From positions 186,001 to 250,000 of the forward strand of contig JAUPSS010000011.1 of assembly GCA_040285825.1 (NCBI GenBank): a stretch of 64,000 nt of DNA. Direction: 5' to 3'. The stretch comes from Eukaryota sp. TZLM1-RC. Its lineage: Eukaryota; Protista; Metamonada: BaSk clade. The notes below the pieces were generated by a model that was not told where the DNA came from, searched no databases, and saw only the letters and a program-made list of their open reading frames with translations. This document shows positions 19,141 to 63,687 of this stretch, piece after piece. Position 1 is the stretch's first letter. Each line of letters opens with the position of its first letter. The position numbers and the translations under genes are program-made.

Positions 19141-19435
19141 TCTATTGTAAGTGTAAAGTGAAAAAAATTGAATCATTTGTTAGAACCTTTGTTTACTAAT
19201 TAGAGAAATGATTATAACAAAAAAATTTTTTGGTGTTAGGTGCGGAGATGTGTTGGTTTAGTCCCTTGATGATTATTATTATTGATGTCAGATCCAGAGG
19301 TGTTGTAACTTTAATCAAATGAATGTACACTATCTTGAAATTCAGTTTCAAGTATAAATGTTCAGGCAAAATCATCAAGTATGGTGAAAAAAATCTATGA
19401 TTTTTGGTCTTATTGAATTCCAACACTTATCAAAA

Positions 19436-20100
19436 TAAACTCATAACGAATGGGACTTTATTCAATGAACCAAGATTTCCTCTGCAAAATTCTGATCTGT
19501 TTGTTTTCTCGCTTTTGTTCCTCTTATTTGATTAGAGAACCGAGGTAATCTATTAATTATGGCAAATTAAACTTGTGAGCACCTCAAAAAGTAATTAAAG
19601 GCTTGCATTAACTAATTGTGAACCAATTTTAGGTAATGATTCCAAAAATTTGCTGCGTTCACTGATGGTCTTCCATTTATAGAAAATGGAAAAAGCATTA
19701 GTAGCAACTTCCGCACTTCAACCAGCATTAGCTTCGATAGCTTTTCTCATATTTCAATGATTTCCATCGACTATGTGGTCAAGTCCTTCTTTGAGTCAAA
19801 TTGTCATTTGCAACATTAAAATATCAACAATAACTTCAAAGTTATCAATCCAATCACAGTATATATCACCTTTATCATTATAACCAAACTTCTTTAATGA
19901 CAATGTTTCTCTAAGCAAAGGCTCTTTAATACATGAGATTCTTGCATTTCGTGCCATATTAAAAACAGTGTCTCTGACAGCATCATTTAATGAAGAACAA
20001 TAAGTTATCAATTTGGAACAAATTCAGGTTTTATTTAACGGAAGGCGGGCAAAGGAATATACAGACGTAATCTCAATTTTGTTACAAAAGCTTCATTATT
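19436..20100 (-). mobile_element. Degenerate 5'-truncated CRE-like retrotransposon (family A), RLE region
   Basis: ORF 19796-20011 DAVRDTVFNMARNARISCIKEPLL..GDIYCDWID; 3' end matches the other copies. Confidence 0.85.
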
Positions 20101-26148: not shown

Positions 26149-28500
26149 TCCGTTTTGAGTTTAAGGTCTGTAGTAATTGATGTTGTAGATTAATAGGTGT
26201 ACCTGACTTCGAGACTGCTCAATTGTCTCTCAGTGACTGAAAACAATTGAATCTCAAAAGAACATTTCAATTGCCCAAAATTTCCATTTTCGATTCAATG
26301 GGAGTTTCCGGACTGCTTTCCTACACGAAACGCCACCCTCGACAACATACATTTGACTTTAATAAACGACAATCTCACGAAGTTCATATAGCTGTCGATA
26401 CTTCCAACATCATCCATTCATTCTTGAAGTCCTTCTTTCCCGATTACCTCAACTTGCCATTTTACGCTAACGGAGTCGACGCTGTTTCGTTTTACAATTA
26501 CAGTGTTCAACTTTTCAGTCAAATAAGAGCTCGTAACATCATCCTACACTTCTTTGTTGAGAAGAAGAATCAACACGACCTGAATGCAAAGTTTGATAAA
26601 AAACAGCATTATTGGCTTGACGAAAAAAAAGAGGTAGTGTTGAATAAAGGATACACAATGGCAGATGACCCCGACTCTTTGCACCGCATCTTCAACAAAG
26701 CAGCACATCAAAGTGGTCATGTACTGAAGTTTGTCCCTGGCGAAGGTGATTATTACATGGCAAATGATGTTTGTAACGGAACATGCTCTGCTGTTTGGAG
26801 TGGTGACAGCGACTTTGTTGTTTTCCCTGGGTGTAAAATGATCCTTCTTGACAAAAACTTCTCTCGACTGCTCGATAACCTGAAAAACAATAAAGAAGCG
26901 AATCATAAAGTGTTTTCCCAACATGATGTTGCCCAAAGCTTAAAGCTATCAGATGATGATATGATTTTGTTGGCCATTATGTGTGGAAGTGATTTTGTAG
27001 AGATAAAGCTCGGACCTTACATGAATAATCTTTCAAACGAAAAGTCTTACATAGGGAGACTGGAAGATATTGCAAGGCAATTGAAGGGTCCCCATCACGG
27101 CGCACGGTTACGCAACAAATGGGAAGAAATTCTACAAAACGACCCAAATCTGTCCAAGCTTGTGAACACTCAGAAAATGTTTTACCGGTATCAGATGCTT
27201 CAAGATGAAGACATTTTTATACTTGAACCCACAATGGAGTTCTCATCCCTCATCAAGCATCACACCATGTATTTATTTAAACGAAAAATTATATTATTCA
27301 ATCCAAATGTAATGATCGGGAACACATTTATTGTCAGTTTTTTTCACAAAATTATCAAGGGTTGCTATGCTCTATACTGGCGTCAGTTAGGACACACGGA
27401 AATTGCAAAGACCCTGTGTGTTGGGCAGCTCAAACCCGAGGAGTACGATTATCGCAAGAAGATAAAGCGATTCAACTGCGTCGAGAATATCCCAAAGTGG
27501 TTTTCTTATAATGAACCAATGGGTCTGACTGGACGAATACAGATGGCTTTCACCTTACTCGATCACTGGAGACCCAAGCGTTCTTTCATCACAACACCAC
27601 TTTCAGAGGTTCTTTTTCAGCAACTCGCTGACCTGTATCAACACACACCAGCTTTTGTTATGTTGGCAATGGTTCTGCGGTTCTTATACCATCTCACAGT
27701 TTTTCACTCAAACTTGTTCTCACCAACTGACCTTGCATTGTTTTCCTTTGTTTGTATCAATGGAATGAAAACGCCATTCAAACTCACTGAACAGTTTGAT
27801 GCTGGTTATGAATCATTTGTTAGGTTTAAAGTGCTTATTACCCTTATGGAACATATCTACCATTTGACCAATCTTTTGAATTTACCAGAATGCTTCCAAT
27901 TGCATTCAATGATTAATTATTCATTGTTTAGCTATTTACGTATGAAAATTCACTCATCAAATATTTCTGGTGCAAACCCAGTTGGTGGTCTTTTGGAGGC
28001 CTTTGATGAGAATCTTATTGAATGGTCTCTTCGATCTCAGCTTCAAAATGATCAGAATGTGGCTCTTTTGATGCGTTTTCTGAGTAATTTTTACGGCATA
28101 CAAGATACATGTTCCTTTGACAATCTGAAACTTGAAGAAATTGCTGATTGGGATAATTTGAATAAGTACAAAGTTAAAGGGCCAAGTCTTGAGGCATTCA
28201 GTAGTGTTGAGGAAGATGTTCAGTGGGACGATCGATATGATCTCAAAGTGGAATTACCAAGTCCTGAGGCAGACCGTAGTGTTGAGGAAGATGTTCAGTC
28301 TAGTGTGGTTGACAGTCTCAATGTTAGAATTAATACCATCGCGAGACCTATGAACACTCAGGGAATTTCTAGTGTCAATTCTTTTGATTTATTATGTGAA
28401 GAATAATTAATTGTCATTTACAAAAATGTGTTTTGTATATAGAAATAAATTTTTTGTTTAAAGTTGTGTTTAATAAAATTCGTTGTTTTAGAAATCATAC
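26149..28500 (+). repeat. Left arm of 2352-bp inverted duplication (right arm 35495-37846)
   Basis: Boundaries TCCGTTTT.AGTTTAAGG and AGAAATCATAC are mirrored in reverse complement in the right arm. Confidence 0.92.
26298..28406 (+). CDS. PIN-domain nuclease, XPG/FEN1-fold Asteroid-like, copy 1
   Basis: MGVSGLLSY, IAVDTSN, GEGDYYMA, SGDSDF, H3TH-like LAIMCGSDF; 702 aa from the ATG. Confidence 0.8.
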   Translation: MGVSGLLSYTKRHPRQHTFDFNKRQSHEVHIAVDTSNIIHSFLKSFFPDYLNLPFYANGVDAVSFYNYSVQLFSQIRARNIILHFFVEKKNQHDLNAKFDKKQHYWLDEKKEVVLNKGYTMADDPDSLHRIFNKAAHQSGHVLKFVPGEGDYYMANDVCNGTCSAVWSGDSDFVVFPGCKMILLDKNFSRLLDNLKNNKEANHKVFSQHDVAQSLKLSDDDMILLAIMCGSDFVEIKLGPYMNNLSNEKSYIGRLEDIARQLKGPHHGARLRNKWEEILQNDPNLSKLVNTQKMFYRYQMLQDEDIFILEPTMEFSSLIKHHTMYLFKRKIILFNPNVMIGNTFIVSFFHKIIKGCYALYWRQLGHTEIAKTLCVGQLKPEEYDYRKKIKRFNCVENIPKWFSYNEPMGLTGRIQMAFTLLDHWRPKRSFITTPLSEVLFQQLADLYQHTPAFVMLAMVLRFLYHLTVFHSNLFSPTDLALFSFVCINGMKTPFKLTEQFDAGYESFVRFKVLITLMEHIYHLTNLLNLPECFQLHSMINYSLFSYLRMKIHSSNISGANPVGGLLEAFDENLIEWSLRSQLQNDQNVALLMRFLSNFYGIQDTCSFDNLKLEEIADWDNLNKYKVKGPSLEAFSSVEEDVQWDDRYDLKVELPSPEADRSVEEDVQSSVVDSLNVRINTIARPMNTQGISSVNSFDLLCEE

Positions 28501-30219
28501 TTGGAAAATTCAAATACAGTGTATTTTTTGTATTTTCTCCAAATGTCTTCCAACGGTTCTACTATTAATTCCTTTTCCCCTGATTAGACTCTTCCAAGTG
28601 GCTTCACTGTGAAAGTCACCACATCAAAGAATGCCCTGTGAATTATGGTAGCTTCACGCAACACCAAAACGTCCTCTCAGTCCGACTTTTATTGTTTTGA
28701 ATGTTCATCCACTTTTGTGAACAGAAACACTTCTCGATTTTTAGATTGAATTTTTAGTTATAACCTTCTGCAGATCCAATGAGTAGTTTCACTGATTCTC
28801 AGTCATCTGATATAGTAGAAAGTTGTGTTTTTCTGAAGGCAGGAAAAAAGTGAAGAAAGAAAAGGAATGCTTCAACTGATGTGAAGAATTGAATGTTATT
28901 CAAATCAACAAAAGGAAGTACACACGCACTCATTTATGATAGTTGTTTCTTTGTTTTGTAGCTTTCGGGGTGTTTCTACAATGAATTGAGTATGTTGGCT
29001 TGTCATTAATTGTTGAAACTTATTACCTGATTGCCAGTAATTATATGATGCATCGATTGTTTCTAAATTGTATTTTTGCCCTGTATTTTTGATTTCTTGA
29101 ATTTCATGTATTTTTTTTGAGTAAAATCTGTATTTTCTAGGTAGGTTAGAAACAGTTATCCCTATAAAAAATAACTAAACAATCAATGTCAAAAATTGAG
29201 CTGACAACACGTCTCAATCACCATCAATAGTGATTACAGAAATCTATTCTGTGAGACAACCGTAGACGAGATATTCCAGCAAAAAAGTTGATGTACGAGC
29301 ATTTGAGAACTTGAAAAGGTGATGCTTTATAAATTGTTTCCATTCTAACCTTGGATTCAAAGTCTTCATTTCTAATGGCTTTTGGGGAGGGTAATTACAT
29401 TTTGAGTAATCTTTTCGTTAATGAAATACTGACAAGATGAATTACTTATCCTTTAATTGTGGCCAATATTCCGAGCCCAAAGAGAACAATAATTGTTTGA
29501 ACGAAATAATTATTTTTATTTTTATTTTTTTAATTTTATTTATTTTTTTAATTATTTTTGACAATATAAATGACACAGAAAAATATAAAAATGTGGACTT
29601 AATTTACACATTATTCGTTCAAGCTCTAAAAAACTTTTCATCATGGCTGTGAATCAACAATTTTTGAATTCATATTTATTGTAATTAATCCATCATTAGC
29701 AGTTATAGTTTTAACTTGATTAAATTATCAGATCTTGAATTTTTGTTATAGTATTTTTATTGAAAATTTCTATTGAAGCAACACTGAAGTATTGCTCAAA
29801 GAGTTGATTTCATTTCGTGTTGAATGCTTTTTAAAACAATTTAAAATTTATCATCATTTGACTTCTCACCCTCATCCAGAACCTCATACTCTGCTGAATT
29901 GAAATTGTTGATACTTAATTCGACAGCACGTGCTTTCTAGGATCATTTAGAGGTTCTAATAATATTTGAACATCATTTTAAAGCAAAAAAACTAAGATAA
30001 AAAATTGTTATATAGATGTACAAAGTTTGAATTGAAATCATTGTTGTTTTTGTTATAAATATTGACAATATTGTATTATTCATCACAGATTATTTGAGAA
30101 ATATCGTTGTAAATCAGGGTCCACATGAATACAGAATGGCATAAAACGATGAATAAAATATTGAAAATAACACAAACAACAGCCATAATGATGTATGTTT
30201 ATTGAACATACACACTTAA

Positions 30220-30310
30220 TAAAATTAATTCATAACTAATGGAACGAATATCATTGAACCAAGCTTTCTTCTACAAAATCTTGATCTACTTGCTGTCTAT
30301 GATAATTCAA
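30220..30310 (-). mobile_element. Short 3' tail of CRE-like family A
   Basis: CATAACTAATGG...ATCATTGAACCAAG...CTACAAAATCTTGATCT matches the 3' ends of the other copies. Confidence 0.75.
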
Positions 30311-31194
30311 TAAGAACTGAAAACATAATGTTGGTTCATTTTGTTGATTTTTCTTGATAATGTAATGATTATAATTGAATTTCTTGGTTTCGTTAATGTT
30401 CCGATCTTCTGTTGAAGAAATTTATTTACATGTCAACAGTGAATGCTACACCCTACAGTTCCCTTTTCGCGTTCGCTACATCATCATGTACATTTTCTAG
30501 TCAAAGATACAAACGTTTCACACAGAAGAGCATTATTGTAAGAATCAATATTCCGATCATTGTTATCACTCGGAACTTTGATTGGCATACAACGTTAAGA
30601 AAAATAGGGAAATATGTATTGGTCACCCTTAAGAGAAAAACCAATGTACAAAAGGTGAGACAGAACAGAAAGTAGAGAAGACTTGTTTCTAGGTATGATT
30701 ATATCTATTGCAAACTTATTTAATCATCTTAAACGGAAATTTTGGCCGAATGTGATAGTTTTATCCACTCAATGCAATATCAGCCCAATAGTTGTGGAAT
30801 TAGACCAGAAGGATCCAGGGAGTAACGTTAGGGGGGTTCTGACAAGGATTTATATTCAAACAGACAGACCAACACGATAATAAGTTGATCAATCTTCAGC
30901 ATAAATTGTTTTGCTTAAAGAGAATCATTGCATTAAATATCTAAAACATGATCAAAATAGCTGCGGTTCACTTGAATTTTGTTTCTGAATTATGATATCA
31001 ATTTATGAAGAGTGTTATACCACTACTTATTGCCCTTTTGATATCACCATTGGAACAAACTTGTCTTATGAAATCAAGTAACAAAAATGCATTATTGGAA
31101 CACAACAAGGATTTCGTAACATTTTTCAGCATAAGCATAAGTGGATTTCATTCCTTGCGATTGTGATGGCACAACAAATACAGCGTCACTATAT

Positions 31195-34100
31195 TTTATT
31201 TATTGAATTTGCACACTTAATTGATTAAACCATAACTAATGAGACGACTATCATTGAACCAAGATTTCCTCTACAAAATCTTGATCTGCTTGCTGTCTAG
31301 CTAAAGCTTCTCTTATTCGATTGAAAAACCGAGGTAATCTATTAACAATGGCAAATTGAATCCGTGAACGCCATAAAAAAATATCAACTCTTTTCATTGT
31401 TTTTTCTTGCACCATTTTTTGGAAGTCATTCAAAAAAGTTTCTGCTTCATCTGATAATCTTCCATTTATCTAAAATGGGAAAGCAATAAAAACCAGCTGT
31501 GTATTTCTATCGGCATTAGCCTCTTCAATATCTTTATCATATTTTCTATGTTTCTCTTTTGCTTTAAAATCAAGAGCAGTCACAGAATTAAGTTTTCTTC
31601 TGTGAACCAAAGTATCATTTGCAACATTACATGAGACAAAGTCAACAATAGCTTCAGAATTATCAATCCAATCACAGTATACATCACCTCTATCATCAGA
31701 ACCAAAATTATTCAGAGAAAGTGTTTCCTTCAGCAGGGGATCTTTGATACATTACATCCTTGCAGTTTGTGCCATATTGAAAACAGTGTCTCTACAGCAT
31801 CATGTAATGAAGAACGATAAGTTATCAATTTAGAGCAATTCAGAGCATGGCACAAAGTGAGTTGAGGTGAATTCGAACAAATACATTTTTCTTTTGATAA
31901 CAATTGATTAATGGGGATGTTCAAATATAATCTCATTTTTGTTACAAATACTTCATTAGTGGCACACAATCCAAATCTTCGTGGTACAATGGTTACAAAA
32001 AGTGAAGAATCTGACGACTTGTTTTCACAAACACCTTTTTCCAACAACATTGAAGGCAGATCTTGATTTAAAACAGCCAAGCTGCATAAATTTTTATAAA
32101 GATCATTTTCATACATTCCAGTCAAACGTTTTTGTAATGTTCGAAGAGTATCCTTCAAATTTAAAAATTCGTTGCTGGAATTTTGCCATTGAATGATTGG
32201 GGAAAGCATCGACCCCATTTTTCTGCATCAATTTTTGAAATTTCTTCATTTACTGCAAAAACAGTGGAACTTTGCGTTGTCATCAATAAATCTTCCCAAT
32301 CTGCAAATTTTTCGGAAAACTCAAAGATTGTGTTTCTGCATCCACCAACAAAAGCACACGAGGTAAGAATAGAAGCCTTCGTCCACCCTAAACCGCCATA
32401 ATGTGGACTGAGGTAAGCATGATCTGGAATCTGGAACATTTGACATCCCAGTAATTGTGACAGAACTTTTGCACGTAATTCGTAAAACTTCTGAGCCAAA
32501 GATCTAGTGACGAGAGGATTTGTAGATCGAAATATATGATCGAAATTGGAACTAAAACACAGTCTTATAATGGTAAATTTGATGTGTTTTTGTATATCTA
32601 AATTCATCATTCGGTCAATTTTGTCAGAAATTGAGTTCAACTTTCCAAACAATTTTTTGGTTATTTCACCGCTATTTCCTAAAAACGAACCCAAATGACG
32701 AATAGCATCAATTGAATAGAATTTGGCTTGAATTTCAATACCATCAACTATTATGGAAACTGGAGAATTCGATAACAAAACACATTTAAGTAAATTAAGT
32801 CGGAGACCAATTTTGGTAAATAATTCTTAAAAACATACAGTTGCTTGTTTCACAATATTTAAATCATCAATTATTACAACATCATCCATATATGAAATAA
32901 TTTTTAGCGAAGGAAACAACTCTTGAATTTGCAGTAAATTAGGATGAATGGCCAAAAAAAACAAAAGAGGTCCTAACGGATCTCCTTGCTTTACACCACT
33001 TGATGAACTCAAAATGCAATAACCAAAATGTAAATTAAAATTTGTGCTATTTGTTGATTGAAAATACGGCATTAATTTAGGCATATATTGCAATAAAGCA
33101 CCATGGATACTGCGACGACATAGTGAATTGGAAAGCATTACTGAAATCCAATGACATACAAACATTGGAGTCATTTTGGCGAATTAATACATCAGTAGCA
33201 AATATCGCTGAAGAGACTCCATCCGTGGTATTCCATATTGAAAGGTTAATAAAATTTTTTTGCTTTCTCATTAAACCTGCTTGAGCAACACGCAGAAAAA
33301 TATTTTGTAAGCTCTCAGAGACTGCAATAGCACGAACAGCCATTTTTGAATTTTTGACAAGTGCAGTCAAACGAGAACTTCTTAATTCTTCTGGGTATTT
33401 GAGTTGACCAGACAATATTTTGTTGAAAAATTTGGTTAATAAACCAAGACAATCCTCTGAAGAAATAATTGCGGCTTTTACATGATCAATAGTAATACCA
33501 GAAAGTCCGGCAGACTTACCGCCTGGTCTCTTTTTGATTACCGAAAAAACTTCTGATGGCATCAATGGATAATTTTCCCAGTAAGTGCCGTAAAACTTTT
33601 GATCCATTATAGGGTCTTCATAAGGATGAAGTATTTTTAGTTTATCTATTGTATTTTCATTGTTGGGTGCTTTAACTCCGGGACTTAAAGCTGACAAAGC
33701 CTTGGACCATTTGTTATCAAAGCATTTGTCTTCAAAAATTTTACTTAATTTCTCGGATGACTGATTTTTTGGTGCTATATTAGTTAAATCTTCGGAATTA
33801 TTTACGAAATTTTGTTCAAAAGGAGGACAAAAAGAACTTAAAAATTCCCAAAGAATATTGATAGCATTATTTCCTTTACATAATTGATCCAAAAATCTTT
33901 TAAAAACGAAAGCAAATTCATTGCATTTTGACGGATGAATTTCTTAAGATATTTTTATGGGAGGATGGTAGTTATGAACTGTGCGGCATTTCAAGCATCG
34001 ATCAGAAGTATTTCCTTTTGCATTTTTTCTAAAAGAAATACCACAATTGTTGCAAGTTTTGTGCTTCAAACGATTGCTAACTGGTTTTGCAAAAACTTGT

Positions 34101-35588: not shown

Positions 35589-37697
35589 TTATTCTTCACA
35601 TAATAAATCAAATGAATTGACACTAGAAATTCCCTGAGTGTTCATAGGTCTCGCGATGGTATTAATTCTAACATTGAGACTGTCAACCACACTAGACTGA
35701 ACATCTTCCTCAACACTACGGTCTGCCTCAGGACTTGGTAATTCCACTTTGAGATCATATCGATCGTCCCACTGAACATCTTCCTCAACACTACTGAATG
35801 CCTCAAGACTTGGCCCTTTAACTTTGTACTTATTCAAATTATCCCAATCAGCAATTTCTTCAAGTTTCAGATTGTCAAAGGAACATGTATCTTGTATGCC
35901 GTAAAAATTACTCAGAAAACGCATCAAAAGAGCCACATTCTGATCATTTTGAAGCTGAGATCGAAGAGACCATTCAATAAGATTCTCATCAAAGGCCTCC
36001 AAAAGACCACCAACTGGGTTTGCACCAGAAATATTTGATGAGTGAATTTTCATACGTAAATAGCTAAACAATGAATAATTAATCATTGAATGCAATTGGA
36101 AGCATTCTGGTAAATTCAAAAGATTGGTCAAATGGTAGATATGTTCCATAAGGGTAATAAGCACTTTAAACCTAACAAATGATTCATAACCAGCATCAAA
36201 CTGTTCAGTGAGTTTGAATGGCGTTTTCATTCCATTGATACAAACAAAGGAAAACAATGCAAGGTCAGTTGGTGAGAACAAGTTTGAGTGAAAAACTGTG
36301 AGATGGTATAAGAACCGCAGAACCATTGCCAACATAACAAAAGCAGGTGTGTGTTGATACAGGTCAGCGAGTTGCTGAAAAAGAACCTCTGAAAGTGGTG
36401 TTGTGATGAAAGAACGCTTGGGTCTCCAGTGATCGAGTAAGGTGAAAGCCATCTGTATTCGTCCAGTCAGACCCATTGGTTCATTATAAGAAAACCACTT
36501 TGGGATATTCTCGACGCAGTTGAATCGCTTTATCTTCTTGCGATAATCGTACTCCTCGGGTTTGAGCTGCCCAACACACAGGGTCTTTGCAATTTCCGTG
36601 TGTCCTAACTGACGCCAGTATAGAGCATAGCAACCCTTGATAATTTTGTGAAAAAAACTGACAATAAATTCCTTCCCGATCATTACATTTGGATTGAATA
36701 ATATAATCTTTCGTTTAAATAAATACATGGTATGATGCTTGATGAGGGATGAGAACTCCATTGTGGGTTTAAGTATAAAAATGTCTTCATCTTGAAGCAA
36801 CTGATACCGGTAAAACATTTTCTGAGTGTTCACAAGCTTGAACAGATTTGGGTCGTTTTGTAGAATTCCTTCCCATTTTTTGCGTAACCGTGCACCGTGA
36901 TGGGGACCCTTCAATTGCCTTGCAATATCTTCTAGTCTCCCTATGCAATACTTTTTATCTGAAAGCATGTTCATGTAAGGTTTGAGCTTTTTCTTTACAA
37001 AATCACTTCCACACATAATGGCCAACAAAATCATATCATCATCTGATAGCTTTAAGCTTTGGGCAACATCATGTTGGGAAAACACTTTATGATTCGCTTC
37101 TTGATTGTTTTTCAGGTTATGGAGCAGTCGAGAGAAGTTTTCGTCAAGAAGGATCATTTTACACCGAGGGAAAACAACAAAGTCACTGTCACCACTCCAA
37201 ACAGCAGAGCATGTTCCGTTCCAAACATCATTTGCCATGTAATAATCACCTTCGCCAGGGACAAACTTCAGTACATGACCACTCTGATGTGCTGCTTTGT
37301 TGAAGATGCGGTGCAAAGAGTCGGGGTCATCTGCCATTGTGTATCCTTTATTCAACACTACCTCTTTTTTTTCGTCAAGCCAATAATGCTGTTTTTTATC
37401 AAACTTTGCCTTCAGGTCGTGTTGATTCTTCTTCTCAACAAAGAAGTGTAGGATGATGTTACGAGCTCTTATTTGACTGAAAAGTTGATCACTGTAATTG
37501 TAAAACGAAACAGCGTCGACTCCGTTAGCGTAAAATGGCAAGTTGAGGTAATCGGGAAAGAAGGAATTCAAGAATGAATTGATGATGTTGGAAGTATCGA
37601 CAGCTATATGAACTTTGTGAGATTGTCGTTCATTAAAGTCAAATGAATGCGGTCGAGAGTGGCTGTTTGTGTAGGAAAGCAGTCCGGAAACTCCCAT
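35589..37697 (-). CDS. PIN-domain nuclease, XPG/FEN1-fold Asteroid-like, copy 2
   Basis: Same motifs and length as copy 1; C-terminal half identical in protein sequence. Confidence 0.8.
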   Translation of the reverse strand: MGVSGLLSYTNSHSRPHSFDFNERQSHKVHIAVDTSNIINSFLNSFFPDYLNLPFYANGVDAVSFYNYSDQLFSQIRARNIILHFFVEKKNQHDLKAKFDKKQHYWLDEKKEVVLNKGYTMADDPDSLHRIFNKAAHQSGHVLKFVPGEGDYYMANDVWNGTCSAVWSGDSDFVVFPRCKMILLDENFSRLLHNLKNNQEANHKVFSQHDVAQSLKLSDDDMILLAIMCGSDFVKKKLKPYMNMLSDKKYCIGRLEDIARQLKGPHHGARLRKKWEGILQNDPNLFKLVNTQKMFYRYQLLQDEDIFILKPTMEFSSLIKHHTMYLFKRKIILFNPNVMIGKEFIVSFFHKIIKGCYALYWRQLGHTEIAKTLCVGQLKPEEYDYRKKIKRFNCVENIPKWFSYNEPMGLTGRIQMAFTLLDHWRPKRSFITTPLSEVLFQQLADLYQHTPAFVMLAMVLRFLYHLTVFHSNLFSPTDLALFSFVCINGMKTPFKLTEQFDAGYESFVRFKVLITLMEHIYHLTNLLNLPECFQLHSMINYSLFSYLRMKIHSSNISGANPVGGLLEAFDENLIEWSLRSQLQNDQNVALLMRFLSNFYGIQDTCSFDNLKLEEIADWDNLNKYKVKGPSLEAFSSVEEDVQWDDRYDLKVELPSPEADRSVEEDVQSSVVDSLNVRINTIARPMNTQGISSVNSFDLLCEE

Positions 37698-38352: not shown

Positions 38353-39340
38353 TGTACTGTAACAAAATTTGTTAGTTTATTGAATTTGCACACTTGATTA
38401 AATTAAATCATAACTAATGGGACGACTATCATTAAACCAAGATTTCCTCTACAAAATCTTGATTTGCTTGCTGTCTAGCTAAAGCTTCTCTAATTCGATT
38501 GAAAAACCGCGGTAATCTATTAATAATGGCAAATTGAATCCGTGAACGCCATAAAAAAATATCAAATCTTTTCATAGTTTTTTCTTTCACCATTTTTTGG
38601 AAGTCATCCAAAAAAGTTTCTGCTTCAACTGATAATCTTCCATTTATCGAAAATGGAAAAGCAATAAAAACCAGCTGTGTATTTCTATCGATATTTGCAT
38701 CTTCAATTTCTTTATCATATTTTCTATGTTTTTCTTTTGCTTTAAAATCCAGAGCAGCCACAGGATTAAGTTTTCTTCTGTGAACCAAAGTATCGTTTGC
38801 AACATTACATGAGACAAAGTCAACAATAGCTTCAGAATTATCAATCCAATCACAGTATACATCACCTCTATCATCAGAACCAAAATTATTCAGAGAAAGT
38901 GTTTCTTTCAGCAGGGGCTCTTTGATACACGATATCCTTGCAGTTTGTGCCATATTGAAAACAGTGTCTCTAACAGCATCATGTAATGAAGAACGATAAG
39001 TTATCAATTTAGAGCAATTTAGAGCATGGCGCAAAGTGAGTTGAGGTGAATTCGAACAAATACATTTTTCTTTTGATAATAATTGGTTAATGGGGATGTT
39101 CAAATATAATCTCATTTTTGTTACAAATGCTTCATTAGTAGCACACAATCCAAATCTTCGTGGTACAATGGTTACAAAAAGTGAAGAATCTGACACCTTG
39201 TTTTCACAAACACCCTTTTCCAATGACAATGAGTGAAGATCTTGATTTAAAACAGCCGAGCTGCAAATATTATTATAAAGATCTTTTTCATACATTCCAG
39301 TCAATCTTTTCTGTAATGTTCGAAGAGTGTACTGTAACAA
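38353..39340 (-). mobile_element. 5'-truncated CRE-like family A copy with intact RLE frame and 13-bp TSD
   Basis: Open 302-codon frame (zinc finger, RGD..VDF..KHRKY); TGTACTGTAACAA at 38353-38365 and 39328-39340. Confidence 0.92.
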
Positions 39341-42356: not shown

Positions 42357-43564
42357 GCACATTGGGCTCAGATGATGGTTCCAAGATCTTTATCAGAAAT
42401 CAACGTCGGCAAGATCTTCAAGTCTTTGTGGTTTCGCAGCATGACGTTGGTAATTTCCCATTCTTCATTTCACATCACATCCCCTCATTGCTGGGTGGTA
42501 GCTCTCGTCTACTCTTCAATGAGTATTTGTCACTATTCTTGAATTGACATTGTGGGAATCTTTATATCCATATTCTAGTAGTTAGAATTACATTGTCTTA
42601 TTGATGTTTATGCCGGTTGATATTCATGTCAATCTCAGTCATTTTCATGCTTTCGGTGTAACATCTGTATGTATAAGATTCATTTTTCAGATTACATTAA
42701 TGGTTGTGTGGTGTAAATAATCAATCCATCAATTATAAGGCCAGTTCATTTAACGATAGACAGTCACTCTTTATCTTGCATCTACTATTTACTAAGTAAA
42801 ACTAGCATTTGTAAACTGTGACATTTTTGGAGGAAATAAAGCATTGTTTTATCTGACGCCTTCTTTCAAGGATTTATATCAAGATTGTGGTAGAGTTGAG
42901 TTGCATAAGAGATAGTCTTATCATGGAGGTTTACCTGCCACTGTTTAATAAATATAATCCTTTTAGGAGTTAATAATTACATTAAAGGGGCCAAATATAT
43001 AAATAATTCTGGAGAAGAACCAGTTAAGTAACTATTTGCTGCAATTTTGTTAACAAATAATTTTAATTTGAATCAAAGTCACAAATAGATAATCCTTTAT
43101 TTTCATAGAGCCCCTACTAATGGAGACGAGTATCAGTTTATGGGGGTTCTATTCCGTAGTTTACTGTGTCCCTTTATTTTCATCTATTGGATTAATGCGA
43201 TTTATTAATAAATTAATAAAACTATATTTGGATCCTTGTCAAATATATAATACTTACATGAAATCAATCAAAAAATTGGGGTCTCTTGTGGCGACATCGA
43301 TTTTGGAGTGATTGAATTGGAGTGAATTATTATGCCTATTGATATGGAATAACAGATATTGAAAAAGCAGAAACTTGTCATGCTCTTTCAAACCTCATTG
43401 CTGGAAGAGCCGTCTGTTCGTAAACAACATTTGTCCTATTAAAAATTTAAGATAAAAATGAAAATAAAAATAAAAATTTAACACGCTATTAATAGTAGTA
43501 ATAATAGTTTGAACTAAACAAATTCTTGGATATAAACATAACAGCTCACACCTGACAAATTCAA

Positions 43565-43613
43565 ATCATTACTAATGGGACGAAATTCATTGAACCAAGA
43601 TTCAACCAAGATT
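43565..43613 (-). mobile_element. Tiny 3' tail of CRE-like family A
   Basis: ACTAATGGGACGA..TCATTGAACCAAGATT, followed by a duplicated AACCAAGATT. Confidence 0.65.
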
Positions 43614-43615
43614 GA

Positions 43616-43873
43616 GATGTCTATTCGTCACGAACTACCATGTGTAAATCATGCGAATGTTTGTGGAATAGAGATGGAACTGCTTAGCTGAATATAATGA
43701 CACTGATGGAAGCACATGTAAAAGGTGGGGACATGCCGTTATACCGTAATAGAAAAAAGTTGGATTGTGAAGGAGCTGACGATGGAGAGGAATGGCCACA
43801 TAGGAAGAGAGTGGTGGGGTTTCGGATGAGTCCAACAATTTGTTCAAGAGAACATACTGCAGGTATAAGGTAA
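43616..43873 (+). pseudogene. Fanzor1 C-terminal remnant
   Basis: MCKSCECLWNRDGTA*LNIMTLMEAHVKGGDMPLY: zinc finger CxxC plus RuvC-III WNRD..A.LNI with an in-frame stop at 43685. Confidence 0.8.
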
Positions 43874-44114
43874 AAATGAATCAAAAATGAGTAAAAAAAC
43901 CGGTAGAAAGAGTACAGAAGAGTCCTAAAGCTCGGAAAAGAAGGTAAGTGAGGGAAAAAGGAACCTAGTTGATGAAGTGAAGAAAAAGTGTGTGAAAAGT
44001 GAAAGCTTCCCAAAACCAAGTTGAGGGTTAAGAACCTCCCAGAACAGGCAACCAGAGGTCGAAAATGGGGTGACAAGTGTAAAAATTGACAGATGAGCTG
44101 ATTATTCTCACTAC

Positions 44115-45079
44115 ATGACAGACATCCACTCTATGTCACGTGTATTCACTCGGTCTTGTGCACTTGACTCGCTGCTCCCTCTTGCAGCTGTGCAACAAAT
44201 TTGGACTGACCTTCCTTTGATCACCGAGATTTGTCAAGGAGCTTCTTTATTGCTTCAATCTTTTCTTCTAAATTTTCCGTTGGCATCTAGAGCTTTAGTG
44301 GAACAGGATGTATGGTGTCTGTTTATGACCATCATCACCACTGGTTTTTTTCCAAAGCCGTCCACCTCCAAAGGACAACGTCAATTACTCCATATCTTTC
44401 ACAGTGGATTTCTTCCTGAATGCCCACAAGACAGGTCTCTTGTTTCTTCATGGAAAAATTTTTCAATGCCTTATAGAAATTCATTCAATCTTTTCCTTAA
44501 TGATTGGCTGCAGTCTCAGAAATGTAATTTTATTAATAGAAAAGGGCTTTCTGCTTAGCTTGCATGTTGGGCCAATATTCCGTTCAAAATTTCAACCAAT
44601 ATTTGAACCATTGGAATTTGGTCAGGAGGAAAGTGTATCTGGAAAGTAATCGCCAGAAATGGAAAATAATTAAATTTGATAACCGCAGACGAAAAGAGAG
44701 ACGGTTTCGAGAGACTCTCAACAAATTTCAAAGACTGGCTGGACATCCTGATAAACTCTACCTTGCTATGGGTTCTGCTAATTTCCCTTCTCATTGCCGA
44801 AAAGTCAATCGATGTGGATCAGCAAGGGCTTTAAGAAAATGGTTGTGTTATCAAAAATACTTGAAGCACTTGCAAACCAGTGAATTTAATACAAGCAAAC
44901 TGTCAAGTTGTTGCATGGCCGAGAATATTCAAGCAGGCTCATTGCAGATGCGTATTTGTACTGAGTGTCAAATAGTATATGACAGAGATATTTCCGCTGC
45001 AAAAAATATTCAAATTAAGAAGAAAGCGGAATTGTGGCCGGAAAGATACATTTGCCCAGAAGCTCTGTTGAGGAGATGA
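44115..45079 (+). mobile_element. Fanzor (eukaryotic TnpB), split and internally shortened: ORFs 44115-44558 and 44564-45079
   Basis: ORF2: LAMGSANF, RuvC-II SEFNTSKLSSCC, CTEC, RuvC-III YDRDISAAKNI. ORF1 resembles a Fanzor1 N-terminus (SCALDSLL..ITEICQGASLLL). No RuvC-I (G.DPG-like) motif visible. Confidence 0.85.
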
Positions 45080-45168
45080 ATAGGGAACGTGAGCATACAG
45101 AAACAAAAACTTTGGGAAAACTGATATTTTATTTTGAGTTTTTTATTGTATTTTTAATTTGTTTGAAA

Positions 45169-45362
45169 AACTTTTGAGACCGATCTACAAATACCGTAGT
45201 AGCATTTGGTAGATCCACTTAGATAAATCAAGTCGCGAGGCTTTGTTCTGTGAAAGCAGTAGGTGTATTTAAGTGAGGTAGCCCATTGATGAAGATCATG
45301 ATTGTCTTTGTCATATGACGCTACATGTCTCTTACAGCCTGTGAGTAGACATTGAGAAAGTT
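45169..45362 (+). ncRNA. Candidate Fanzor omegaRNA scaffold
   Basis: Back-to-back helices 45182-45215, 45216-45275 (enclosing GCGA and GAAA tetraloop hairpins), 45278-45324 and 45325-45352, with a possible closing helix 45169-45175/45356-45362; starts ~100 nt after the Fanzor stop. Confidence 0.7.
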
Positions 45363-45441
45363 GAAAACAGGAGTGAACTTTACAGGGGAACGCATGATAA
45401 GTGAATTCACAGTATGTCTATGTAATCTACAGTTTCGTCAT

Positions 45442-46272
45442 ATGCTCTTGCTGTTTGTCTTAATCAATGCAGTGCTCTCTTACACATACATTACAGAGTT
45501 TAGCCATCGCTTACAAACAGCACCAGAATCCTTGTTTACTTTTCCCTACAGTTTCGAATCCGTTCCAGCGACTGTGTTCAGCACTCCGCCGGAATTGTCA
45601 CTACCCAGACATTTTGACATAAGATCATTTAACTGCGGGAATTACACCATACATCAAGGTCTTTGCGGCAGTTGTTATGCTTGGGCTGCCGTGACGTCAC
45701 TTCAAGATCGTTTTTGTTACAACAATCACAAAACAGCTCCTCTTAGTCCCCAGTCAATCATCAGTTGTGGGTGGAGCAATTTGGGATGTTCTGGAGGTAG
45801 TCCATGGCTTACCTACAACTACTTGAAACGGCATGGGTCACCCTCTCTTCAATGTTATCCTTACTCTTCAGGAATGGGCCATAGAACAACTTGCAGAAGA
45901 AACTGTGTGGATGGAAGCCCGTTTGATCTATATTACAGCAATGAAACCTTCTTCTACAGAACTGAATCAGACATGCAGGCAGGCCTGTTTCTCCACGGTT
46001 CAATGCAGATAGCGTTCTTCGTTTACGCTGACTTTTTGTCACATCAACTTGGCATTTATCATCATACAAAAGGTCGTTTATTAGGTGTACATAGTGTTAG
46101 GTTGATAGGGTGGGGAACAGAGAGTGGTGTTCCTTATTGGCTTTGTGCAAACAGTTTCGGAGATGACTGGGGTGATCAAGGGTTTTTCAAAATACGTAGA
46201 GGTAGTAATGAATGTGGACTCGAGTGGTTTGGGGGAATTGGTGGGTCGCCTGTCCCAAAGAATGGTCATTAG
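45442..46272 (+). CDS. Cathepsin B-like papain-family cysteine protease
   Basis: Signal peptide MLLLFVLINAVLS; QGLCGSCYAW (catalytic Cys), HSVRLIGWG (His), ANSFG (Asn), GFFKIRRGSNECG; no obvious occluding loop. Confidence 0.92.
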   Translation: MLLLFVLINAVLSYTYITEFSHRLQTAPESLFTFPYSFESVPATVFSTPPELSLPRHFDIRSFNCGNYTIHQGLCGSCYAWAAVTSLQDRFCYNNHKTAPLSPQSIISCGWSNLGCSGGSPWLTYNYLKRHGSPSLQCYPYSSGMGHRTTCRRNCVDGSPFDLYYSNETFFYRTESDMQAGLFLHGSMQIAFFVYADFLSHQLGIYHHTKGRLLGVHSVRLIGWGTESGVPYWLCANSFGDDWGDQGFFKIRRGSNECGLEWFGGIGGSPVPKNGH

Positions 46273-46763
46273 CACAAACCACTGCATATTAAATGTGCTT
46301 TTGGGCTGGTTATTACATTGGACCATGCAATGAGCTCCATTGTTTGGCTTTCATCAAGTCATTCCGGCTGCAACAATCAAAACCATAAAGACAATCAGCA
46401 CTATCAAGAGACACCTTATTTTACACCACTATTGTTGCTGTTGTAATGTTTTTTATCTTGTAGTCTTGAAGAGGTGGTCTCAATCTTTATAAAAAACTCA
46501 AACATTAAAAACTTTATAATTAGTTTTTTTTGAAATACTCATATTATATCTGTTCAAATTGATAAATAGTATAGGAATCGTGCACTGAAGAGACTTGATG
46601 ATGTTGATGCGTGTATTGAGGATAATGAGTTCAAGTTTTTGCGTGAATATTTAAAACGAATAAAAACAATTAAAAAAAGTTTTGGGAAAAAAACTCAAAT
46701 AAACAAATAAATAAACGACAAAAACGAAAAATAAATAAATAAAAACGTTAAGTCAAAAAAAAG

Positions 46764-61001: not shown

Positions 61002-62909
61002 TTCCAAAGTCTATATCGTATTTTCAATCAACATATTGCACATATTCTAATTTACATTTTGATAATAACATTTTGAGTTCATCAAGTGGTGTAAAGCAAG
61101 GAGATCCGTTAGGACCTCTTTTGTTTTGTTTGACCATTCATCCTATTTTACTGCAAACTCAAGAGATGTTTCCTTCACTAACAATGATGACATATATGGA
61201 TGATGTTGTGCTTATTGGTGATTTAAATAGTGAGAAACAAGCAACTGTATGTTTTAAAGAATTATTTACCAAAATTGGTATCTGACTTAATTTACCTAAA
61301 TGTGTTTTGTTATCGAATTCTCCAGTTTCCACAATAGTTGATGGTATTGAAATTCAAGCCAAATTATATTCAATTGATGCTATTCGTCATTTGGGTTCGT
61401 TTTTAGGAAATAATGATGAAATTACCAAAAAATTGTTTGAAAAGTTGAACTCAATTTCTGACAAAATTGACCGAATGATGAATTTAGATATAAAAAAACA
61501 CATCAAATTTACCATTATAAGACTGTGTTTTAGTTCCAATTTTAATCATATATTTCGATCTACAAATCCTCTCGTCACTAGACCTTTGGCTCAGCAGTTT
61601 AATGAGTTACGTGTAAAAGTTCTGTCTCGATTACTGGGATGTAAAATGTTTCAAATTCCAGATCATGCTTACCTTAGTCCACATTATGGCGGTTCAGGGT
61701 GGACGAAGGCTTCTATTCTTACCTCGTGTGCTTTTGTTGGTGGATGCAGAAATGCAATCTTTGAGTTTTCCGAAAGATTTGCAGATTGGGAAGATTTATT
61801 GATGACAACGCAAAGTTCCACTGTTTTTGCATTAAATGAAGAAATTTCAAAAATTGATGTAGAAAAATGGGGTCGATGTTTTCCCCAATCATTCAATGGC
61901 AATATTCCAGAAAAAAATGTTTTAAATTTGAAGTACACTCTTCGAACATTACAGAAACGATTGACTGGAATGTATGAAAAAGATCTTTATAATAATATAT
62001 GCAGCTCGGCTGTTTTAAATCAAGATCTTCACTCATTGTTATTGGAAAAGGGTGTTTGTGAAAACAAGTCGTCAGATTGTTCACTTTTTGTAACCATTGT
62101 ACCACGAAACTTTGGATTGTGTGCCACTAATGAAGCATTTGTAACAAAAATGAGATTATTTTTGAACATCCCCATTAATCAATTATTATCAAAAGAAAAA
62201 TGTATTTGTTCGAATTCACCTCAACTCACTTTGCGCCATGCTCTGAATTGCTCTAAATTGATAACTTATCGTTCTTCATTACATGATGCTGTTAGAGACA
62301 CTGTTTTCACTATGGCACAAACTGCAAGGATATCGTGTATCAAAGAGCCCCTGCTGAAGGAAACACTTTCTCTGAATAATTTTGGTTCTGATGATAGAGG
62401 TGATGATGTATAGTGTGATTGGATTGATAATTCTGAAGCTATTGTTGACTTTGTCTCATGTAATGTTGCAAATGATACTTTGGTTCACAGAAGAAAACTT
62501 AATCCTGTCGCTGCTCTGGATTTTAAAGCAAAAGAGAAACATTGAAAATATGATAAAGATATTGAAGAGGCTAATGTCGATAGAAATACACAGCTGGTTT
62601 TTATTGCTTTCCCATTTTCGATAAATGGAAGATTATCAGTTGAAGCAGGAACTTTTTTGAATGACTTCCAAAAAATGGTGCAAAAAAACAATGAAAAGAT
62701 TTGATATTTTTCTATGGCGTTCACGGATTCAATTTGCCATAATGAATAGATTACCACGGTTTTTCAATCGAATAGGAGGAGCTTTAGCTACACAGCAAGC
62801 AGATCAAGATTTTGTAGAGGAAATCTTGGTTCAATGATAGTCGTCCCATTAGTTATGAGTTAATTTAATTAAGTGCGCAAATTCAATAAATACAATTTTC
62901 CAAAGGCTA
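61002..62909 (+). mobile_element. 5'-truncated CRE-like family A retrotransposon with 12-bp TSD, inserted in a family C repeat
   Basis: GVKQGDPLGPLLF, YMDD, zinc finger and RLE with a few stops/frameshifts; TTCCAAAGTCTA at 61002-61013 and TTCCAAAGGCTA at 62898-62909. Confidence 0.92.
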
Positions 62910-63687
62910 CAATGAAAACCATCTGTAAAGAATTAGCATTTCAAGCTCTCAAATGCTCGTCCCTAACCTTTTCTGCTAGAGAATCTCGTATGCGGTCAGC
63001 TGATGGAGCAAAATGATAGAAAACACCATGGGCCGCGACTTAAAAATGTTACAAGCTGAGTATTTCACGTTGATTGCCAAAACGAAAAATTGATTTTCCT
63101 ATTAAACAAACGATATTGATCCACAGTTTCGGCATCATTATAATAGGGTTTCGACATTTCCAAGTCCCCCCGTTGTAGAGAGAAGTGTCTAGGTTGTGTT
63201 TTTGTTTTAGCTTCAAGAAAGAAGTATTAGATTTGATTTCTAGAAATCAAAACAACTCCTTCAAATTACTGTACGATTTTGTGATAAAACCGATGTCAAT
63301 TGCCAATTTCAACAAGTTTGGTTTTCAAATGGAGATTCATTCTAAACATTCGCTATTACAAATGTTGACCAACTAAATTTAAAAGGAAAAGTGATTTACC
63401 AGCAATTCATTATGTAACATTGATATGGAGACTTGAAACCCAATTTATTCCATCCCTTTAAGCAGGCATAACATTCACGGGCGTTTGTGCACCAATGTAG
63501 GACGACAGAAGTAAAAGAATACTTACTAATATTGATCTCTTCACCGACAATAAAAAGAGACTTACTAAATGGTCCGATTCAATATAAGGAGATCAAAATA
63601 CAACTGAGATCACCAGTTACGTGGATGAAGAAAGTTAGAACAGTATAAGAGAAGAAATCCTTTATTTTATCAAAAGCAACCCCCTCA

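Follow-up and report, generated by a model that had tools for sequence, protein, structure and literature searches.

A conserved right-end fold, candidate omegaRNA scaffold of a decayed Fanzor1-like transposon family in the metamonad Skoliomonas litria

Introduction

In eukaryotes, Fanzors are the sole RNA-guided DNA nucleases known so far, and the omegaRNAs that they use are highly variable and difficult to predict. Whether such an RNA can be recognised and delimited at a single locus is the question raised by a stretch of 64,000 nucleotides (nt) from Eukaryota sp. TZLM1-RC (assembly GCA_040285825.1, contig JAUPSS010000011.1, positions 186,001 to 250,000 of the forward strand; hereafter the window), in which the end of a Fanzor-like open reading frame (ORF) is followed by a large, structured region. 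TZLM1-RC has been described as Skoliomonas litria, a haloalkaliphilic metamonad that is free-living, and TZLM3-RCL belongs to the same genus (PMC11603281, PMC11316075). An earlier note, made from the letters of the window, had described the arrangement as a Fanzor gene with a candidate omegaRNA, the guide of which would be taken from the DNA just upstream of the ATG of a cathepsin B-like protease.

Judged by comparison of its copies, window 43961–45412 is a copy, decayed and with an internal deletion, of a DNA-transposon family of S. litria of ~2.4 kb, and a divergent Fanzor1-like RNA-guided nuclease is the sole ORF of this family. The 197-nt fold that follows the ORF is, by the same comparison, a conserved right-end module of the family, and it is probably the omegaRNA scaffold. 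This function is suggested by the position and the strand of the fold and by its conservation throughout the family.

A Multi-Helix Fold Downstream of the Fanzor ORF

The fold occupies 45168–45364 on the + strand, which is the strand of the Fanzor gene, and is located between the stop codon and the right end of the element. Minimum free energy (MFE) folding of 45170–45362 (+) reproduces exactly the four helices of the earlier note, namely H1, H2 with its two GNRA hairpins, H3 and H4, and adds an outer stem that closes around them by pairing AACUUUU with GAGAAAGUU. In the window the + strand reaches −55.3 kcal/mol (z −3.6), with none of 200 shuffles as good, compared with −41.9 kcal/mol (z −1.9) for the − strand. 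The least mutated paralogue, at locus L001, folds at −70.0 kcal/mol (z −6.6, again 0/200 shuffles as good) on the + strand and at −50.1 kcal/mol (z −3.6) on the − strand, a sense-strand advantage of 20 kcal/mol. Because the + strand folds better than the − strand and nine of the 75 base pairs are G-U pairs, the asymmetry points to an RNA that would be read from the Fanzor strand, in line with the preference for the + strand proposed earlier. With DNA folding parameters the fold is still significant (z −4.7).

Among 2554 sliding 197-nt segments of the 64 kb, the fold of the window ranks 22nd by MFE, at 40% GC. Two other 197-nt segments, 27451–27647 (−) and 36351–36547 (+), are more stable than the Fanzor fold of the window, with −64 kcal/mol at 43–44% GC. 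Rfam gave no match, either for 43000–46500 with permissive E-values of up to 10 or for the whole window at gathering scores, and thus assigns the fold to no housekeeping RNA; ARAGORN found no transfer RNA (tRNA). With no Rfam match, an identification as a known ribozyme, intron, small nuclear RNA or small nucleolar RNA is unsupported.

Conservation of the Fold Across Copies

The family is multi-copy in S. litria, with at least 45 annotated ORF fragments across many contigs as found by a word-based search and a cluster listing. When the 171-residue C-terminal ORF of the window was used as a library-wide phmmer query, 16 matches were obtained, including six fragments from TZLM1-RC that are 76–94% identical to it and two proteins from TZLM3-RCL, P0006 (659 aa) and P0007 (382 aa), with identities of 44–45%. 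Ten loci from S. litria (L001, L002 and L005–L012) and two from the sister species (L003 and L004) were compared. Together with the window this makes 11 S. litria copies, which were scanned on both strands over 167 kb with a covariance model (R1) built from three copies.

The model matched the window with 230.5 bits and six further copies (L001, L005, L007, L008, L009 and L012) over the full length with 211–238 bits, while two damaged copies (L010 and L011) scored 176 and 127 bits. L002 gave a remnant match of 27 bits and L006 no match; both keep the first 40–45 nt of the fold and then diverge. The fold is therefore found 3' of a Fanzor remnant in nine of the 11 S. litria copies, and the paralogues carry it in the 3' flanks, where the earlier note had predicted it. 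All ten matches of the model lie 3' of Fanzor remnants, none of them is stand-alone, and there is no other match in the 167 kb. Within the 64-kb window no further paralogue of either the fold or the ORF was found, and no related loci were detected when metagenome and viral contigs were searched with protein patterns and metagenome contigs with a DNA pattern of the two-tetraloop segment.

Wherever the junction is unbroken, the fold starts ~25 nt past the stop codon, the intervening sequence corresponding to the conserved post-stop linker seen in the copy alignments (window 45080–45104, +). Exceptions are L010, where a deletion reaches into the ORF, and the window itself, where a T-rich insertion of 53–61 nt follows the linker (to 45165, +, with a start at about 45105 or 45114, the edges being ambiguous owing to a short duplication). 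The T-rich spacer of the earlier note is thus real (~45105/45114–45165) but private to the window copy rather than part of the element, since it is absent from L001, L002, L005, L007, L008 and L009. The fold varies less than the adjacent ORF, with 7.6% versus 13.4% segregating sites and a mean pairwise difference of 2.7% versus 4.7%.

Three independent breakpoints, two truncations and one deletion of 380 nt, fall within 22 nt in the first hairpin of the fold, H1 (window ~45190–45212; L002 ~5610, L006 ~5631, L010 ~6684). The cluster is statistically marginal and may mark a fragile or processing-related site.

The Right End of the Element

Beyond the fold the copies remain homologous for another 48 nt, up to window 45412, and this stretch includes a terminal hairpin. 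In intact copies this tail (45365–45412, +) contains two 11-nt motifs that are exact reverse complements and form an 11-bp hairpin, as seen in the fold of L007 5953–6220. The hairpin stops 2 nt short of the element end, and in the window both of its arms (45373–45383 and 45401–45410) are mutated. Six copies (the window, L005, L007, L008, L009 and L010) end sharply after CACAG, beyond which lie six unrelated AT-rich flanks, each of them starting with T, and the pairwise difference jumps from 3–10% to 62% past 45413. Three further copies are truncated slightly before this end. The earlier note had expected a sharp drop in conservation at the element end and the start of the guide right after the fold; the drop exists, but the candidate guide template begins at 45413, past the tail and its hairpin.

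AGTGA-type motifs are present at both ends of the element in direct orientation, and no terminal inverted repeat (TIR) or target site duplication (TSD) was recognised in it. For a comparison of motifs of the target-adjacent motif (TAM) type, only three independent left flanks are available. A scan for bacterial promoters and terminators, the models of which are not applicable to this organism, returned nothing.

The Window Copy Is a Relic of a Divergent Fanzor1-Like Gene

Comparison of the copies gives a repeat of ~2.4 kb with the order left end, ORF of ~650 codons, short linker, 197-nt fold, 48-nt tail and right end. In the window, the left end and 5' leader span 43961–44114 (+), with the homology starting at GAACCTAGTT, a start common to all copies that keep the left end (five-copy alignment; blastn of L010 4848–5458 against window 43961–44572). 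They are followed by 147 codons of the Fanzor N-terminus (44115–44558, +), which end at a nonsense codon (44556–44558) and have no Pfam match. From blastp E-values of 0.57–8.7 this ORF had been guessed to be unrelated to Fanzor, a view overturned by tblastn, which aligns residues 1–153 of P0045 with 44115–44573 at 80% identity and identifies it as a genuine Fanzor N-terminus. P0045 (560 aa) is the longest annotated S. litria protein of the family and lacks the nuclease C-terminus. At 44572/44573 an internal deletion has removed ~960–990 nt, corresponding to residues ~154–472 with WED, the linker and the RuvC-I Asp: the alignment passes from L010 5458 to 6447 at window 44572, and from P0045 residue 153 to 473. 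The C-terminal ORF of 171 codons (44564–45079, +) contains all features ascribed to it in the earlier note, namely the SEFNTSK motif (44879–44899) with the shifted RuvC-II Glu (44882–44884), the zinc-finger Cys codons of a CC...CTEC motif (44909–44914 and 44957–44968) and the RuvC-III Asp within DRD (44981–44989).

The RuvC-I motif IGVDLGQSRL of the paralogues is absent from the window copy as a result of the internal deletion, so that its catalytic Asp-Glu-Asp triad is incomplete, while the family retains all three residues. The fold of the window carries four private substitutions, two of which disrupt base pairs. Read from its sequence, the window "gene" is an internally deleted pseudogene and cannot be active, because RuvC-I is gone, a nonsense codon and the 53–61-nt insertion have been acquired, two substitutions break stems and the terminal hairpin is damaged; the working Fanzor gene of the earlier note is thus not present here. 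Frameshifts, stops, truncations or deletions have disrupted each of the 11 S. litria copies examined, including that of the window.

The protein is a member of the TnpB/Fanzor superfamily. ORF 44564–45079 scores above the Pfam gathering threshold for Cas12f1-like TNB (PF07282; 28.7 versus 26.3 bits, E 1.5e-6), and P0006 and P0007 also exceed this cutoff. The family alignment keeps the RuvC-I Asp (IGVDLG), the shifted Glu (SEFNTSK) and the RuvC-III Asp (DRD). At the canonical RuvC-II position it reads LAMGSANF, which contains no Glu, and the conserved Glu of xEFNTSK is placed nine residues ahead of CC. Fanzors typically have their site rearranged in this way, with the Glu moved beside the zinc finger (PMC11832414, PMC13565253).

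The link to characterised Fanzor1 proteins is transitive. P0006 alone had no match among the PDB sequences, and a profile of skoliomonad sequences reached no Fanzor in the PDB, its sole marginal match being Cas12m (E 0.0017). By contrast, hhalign related the skoliomonad profile to an intermediate set of uncharacterised relatives (306–713 aa) with 99.5% probability and an E-value of 3.7e-23 over 298 columns, and the profile of the intermediate set in turn matched SpuFz1 (E 3.9e-23, ~450 positions), GtFz1 (2.4e-20), ApmFz2 (1.1e-9) and TnpB (5.7e-5) in the PDB. Via the intermediates, the family is thereby homologous to characterised Fanzor1 in the WED, RuvC and TNB regions. The AlphaFold model of P0006, with a predicted local distance difference test (pLDDT) score of 57 overall and 80–93 in RuvC and TNB, retrieved SpuFz as the best Foldseek match, followed by Cas12f, ApmFz2 and TnpB, and the top 25 matches were all Fanzor, Cas12f or TnpB. 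These profile and structure matches bear out the identity proposed in the earlier note, and the family is classed here as a divergent Fanzor1-like clade.

Sister-Species Homologues

In TZLM3-RCL, both intact Fanzor homologues are located directly downstream of, and colinear with, a gene for an XPG/FEN-like nuclease (L003 2923–6980 and L004 3185–6149). Homology in tblastx between L003 and L004 is unbroken over the boundary between the XPG and Fanzor genes, and the "XPG" gene model of L004 includes the Fanzor N-terminal region. The arrangement may represent an XPG-Fanzor fusion or a two-gene unit.

Is the Fold an OmegaRNA Scaffold?

Together with the 48-nt tail and its terminal hairpin, the fold makes up a conserved non-coding right end that is most likely an omegaRNA scaffold. 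This RNA would arise by transcription on the + strand, either as the 3' portion of the Fanzor transcript or by read-through from it, and would then be bound by the nuclease of the family. The 3' transcripts of Fanzors reach 14–15 nt into non-conserved sequence (PMC13565253). By analogy, the RNA would run ~14–15 nt into the flank, here from 45413, and could act as a guide against the empty donor site. The candidate guide template of the window is thus 45413–45427 (+), the first unique flank, because known Fanzor 3' transcripts extend by this length past the element.

Several observations weigh against the scaffold. At the intact homologues P0006 and P0007 (L003 and L004) the fold is undetectable, the covariance model giving at most 9 bits with filters off, which is noise. 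One of the sister-species homologues is followed by an 85-nt T-rich gap and then the next gene, and the 430-nt 3' flank of L004 is unstructured (z +0.1). Among the 11 S. litria copies no intact nuclease was found, so that a partner nuclease is not demonstrated in the genome. Covariation, for which the earlier note had proposed a test, did not appear: the 75 pairs contain no genuine double change and shuffles equal the observed alignment, but the copies differ by only 2–5% and this similarity leaves the test without power. Among the substitutions acquired after insertion, those that break stems are about as frequent as those that leave them paired, which fits the neutral decay expected of dead copies. 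Finally, the omegaRNAs of Fanzor1 comprise 75–150 nt with a 7-bp stem-loop 1 (SL1; PMC11423790), and the candidate scaffold, with ~245 nt, is longer than those of the solved Fanzor1 structures.

The main rival holds that the fold and the terminal hairpin serve the transposon in cis and have no guide role, either as a right end that is recognised as DNA or single-stranded DNA by a trans-acting transposase, as in IS200/IS605-like or Helitron-like elements, or as a 3'-untranslated region that stabilises or terminates the Fanzor mRNA. We regard this as possible but rather unlikely. It would account for the position of the 11-bp hairpin 2 nt from the element end, for the T that starts all six intact right flanks and for the directly oriented AGTGA-type motifs at both ends, and it is consistent with the significant z-score under DNA parameters and with a fold in which no covariation ties the structure to an RNA function. 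Yet 197 nt with five stems, nine G-U pairs and an advantage of 20 kcal/mol for the sense strand far exceed the needs of known end-recognition hairpins, and in place and strand the fold agrees with all characterised TnpB and Fanzor omegaRNAs. Since the terminal hairpin could do both jobs, the cis-acting and omegaRNA readings partially overlap.

A different origin is assumed if the fold began as a separate non-coding RNA gene, or as a small non-autonomous element, and was captured beside one ancestral Fanzor copy and then co-amplified. Room for an unknown RNA class is left by the lack of an Rfam family, and the intact Fanzors of the sister species without the fold, as well as the three breakpoints clustered at its 5' hairpin, would suit such a capture. 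The idea is nevertheless very unlikely, since the ten of ten matches in the 167 kb are 3' of a Fanzor remnant with constant spacing from the stop codon where the junction is unbroken, none being stand-alone, and homology is unbroken from the ORF via the fold to the common right end. Still more improbable is that the right end has been co-opted as promoter or 5' leader of downstream host genes, here of the cysteine protease. The element does end 29 nt before the probable ATG of the protease and provides an in-frame upstream ATG, and eight of the 11 S. litria copies are followed by a gene model on the same strand starting ~30–150 nt downstream. However, eight of 11 is not different from the 50% expected, any intergenic insertion in this compact genome is near some gene, and the downstream genes are mutually unrelated. 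A fold formed by chance in AT-rich intergenic DNA, an explanation for which nothing speaks beyond the general frequency of hairpins in such DNA, is refuted by the z-score of −6.6 with 0/200 shuffles and by the conservation in nine copies, including the six further matches of 211–238 bits and the two damaged ones of 127–176 bits.

Comparison With Known Systems

The Fanzor1 systems of which omegaRNA complexes have been solved, SpuFz1 (8GKH), GtFz1 (9CER) and PpFz1, share with the skoliomonad family a TnpB-type RuvC with zinc finger and a RuvC-II Glu beside the zinc finger. They likewise belong to eukaryotic multi-copy mobile elements, the sense strand of which has a structured non-coding region between the end of the ORF and the right end, with copy-specific sequence right after. 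Like the 7-bp SL1 of Fanzor1, the first stem of the candidate, H1, opens with seven base pairs, and the GtFz1 omegaRNA likewise has four stem-loops (PMC11423790). By contrast, the skoliomonad protein is very divergent and linked through intermediates only, its Glu is nine residues ahead of the first Cys instead of ~6, the candidate scaffold of ~245 nt compares with 75–150 nt, and no TIR or TSD is recognised. The mimivirus Fanzor2 ApmFz2 (9B0L) also has the shifted catalytic Glu, and its omegaRNA of 247 nt (PMC11832414) is near the size of the candidate. The profile match to ApmFz2 is weaker than that to Fanzor1 (E 1.1e-9 versus 3.9e-23), however, and neither a serine recombinase nor an IS607-like context was seen here.

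In bacterial IS200/IS605 elements the TnpB omegaRNA, or right-end element RNA (ISDra2, 8H1J), is derived from the right end and takes its guide from the flank, and the same layout is proposed by analogy for the skoliomonad element. Both have a subterminal right-end hairpin and lack TIRs, and both may follow the logic of homing, with cleavage of the empty donor site by the nuclease. The skoliomonad family differs in its eukaryotic host, in a protein of ~650 aa with a long helical N-terminus and in the replaced canonical RuvC-II position, and no TnpA-like gene was found in the element or in the loci examined. Fanzor1 has been reported within Helitrons (PMC13565253). With the 3' end of Helitrons the element shares a terminal hairpin a few nt before the end, a flank starting with T (6/6 copies) and the lack of TIRs, a resemblance that is a lead only. 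Unlike Helitrons it ends in CACAG and not in CTRR, its 5' end has no clear TC, and a Rep/helicase was not found.

Neighbouring Genes and Dispersed Repeats

The element is followed by a gene for a papain-family cysteine protease (45442–46272, +; Pfam Peptidase_C1, E 2.2e-47), which is outside the element. The earlier note had taken the ATG at 45394, the first in frame, as its start. This codon is situated in tail sequence of the transposon that is common to other copies, and because it lies within the element, the ATG at 45442, which opens a signal-peptide-like MLLLFVLINAVLS, is the likelier start.

At other copies, too, the surroundings were recorded. The Fanzor copy of L001 (5409–6310) is 5'-truncated and adjoins a remnant of a retrotransposon integrase/chromodomain, and in L002 (5663–6439) a gene for a DNA_pol_B_exo1 proofreading exonuclease begins ~50 nt past the truncated right end of the Fanzor relic.

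Two other dispersed repeats were encountered. One of ~100–220 bp has six copies in the 64 kb with 77–87% identity, at 43520–43640 (+), 38362–38594, 62674–62910, 30184–30304, 19396–19599 and 31190–31416, and recurs in L006 (5717–5795), L007 (1500–1715) and L008 (431–648). It has no Rfam or tRNA match and may be a miniature inverted-repeat transposable element, a short interspersed nuclear element or a regulatory module. The other, of ~630 bp with 79–80% identity, is present at window 32227–32856 (−) and 61234–61858 (+) and in L007 (3463–4092).

Implications

For the annotation of the window, the "Fanzor gene" becomes a pseudogene, ORF 44115–44558 the N-terminus of that gene, and the first in-frame ATG of the protease (45394) transposon sequence. 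A bolder reading, which we consider unlikely as a whole, is that the right end encodes an unusually large omegaRNA (~245 nt, five stems) of a previously undescribed, deeply divergent metamonad clade of Fanzor1-like proteins, that this eukaryotic Fanzor, with its terminal hairpin, its T-initial flanks and no TIR or TSD, is still moved by a single-strand, HUH-type mechanism (IS200/IS605-like or Helitron-like), and that guide RNAs from the relics may still serve a nuclease encoded at another locus.

The comparison yields a candidate scaffold with precise bounds, made up of the fold, the tail with its terminal hairpin, and the right end, and a covariance model by which the fold is recognised. The Fanzor1-like family concerned is very divergent, and its host is a free-living metamonad from a deep branch. 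An intact nuclease of the family, should one exist or be reconstructed from the copies, would form with the putative scaffold a pair that is directly testable for RNA-guided cleavage.

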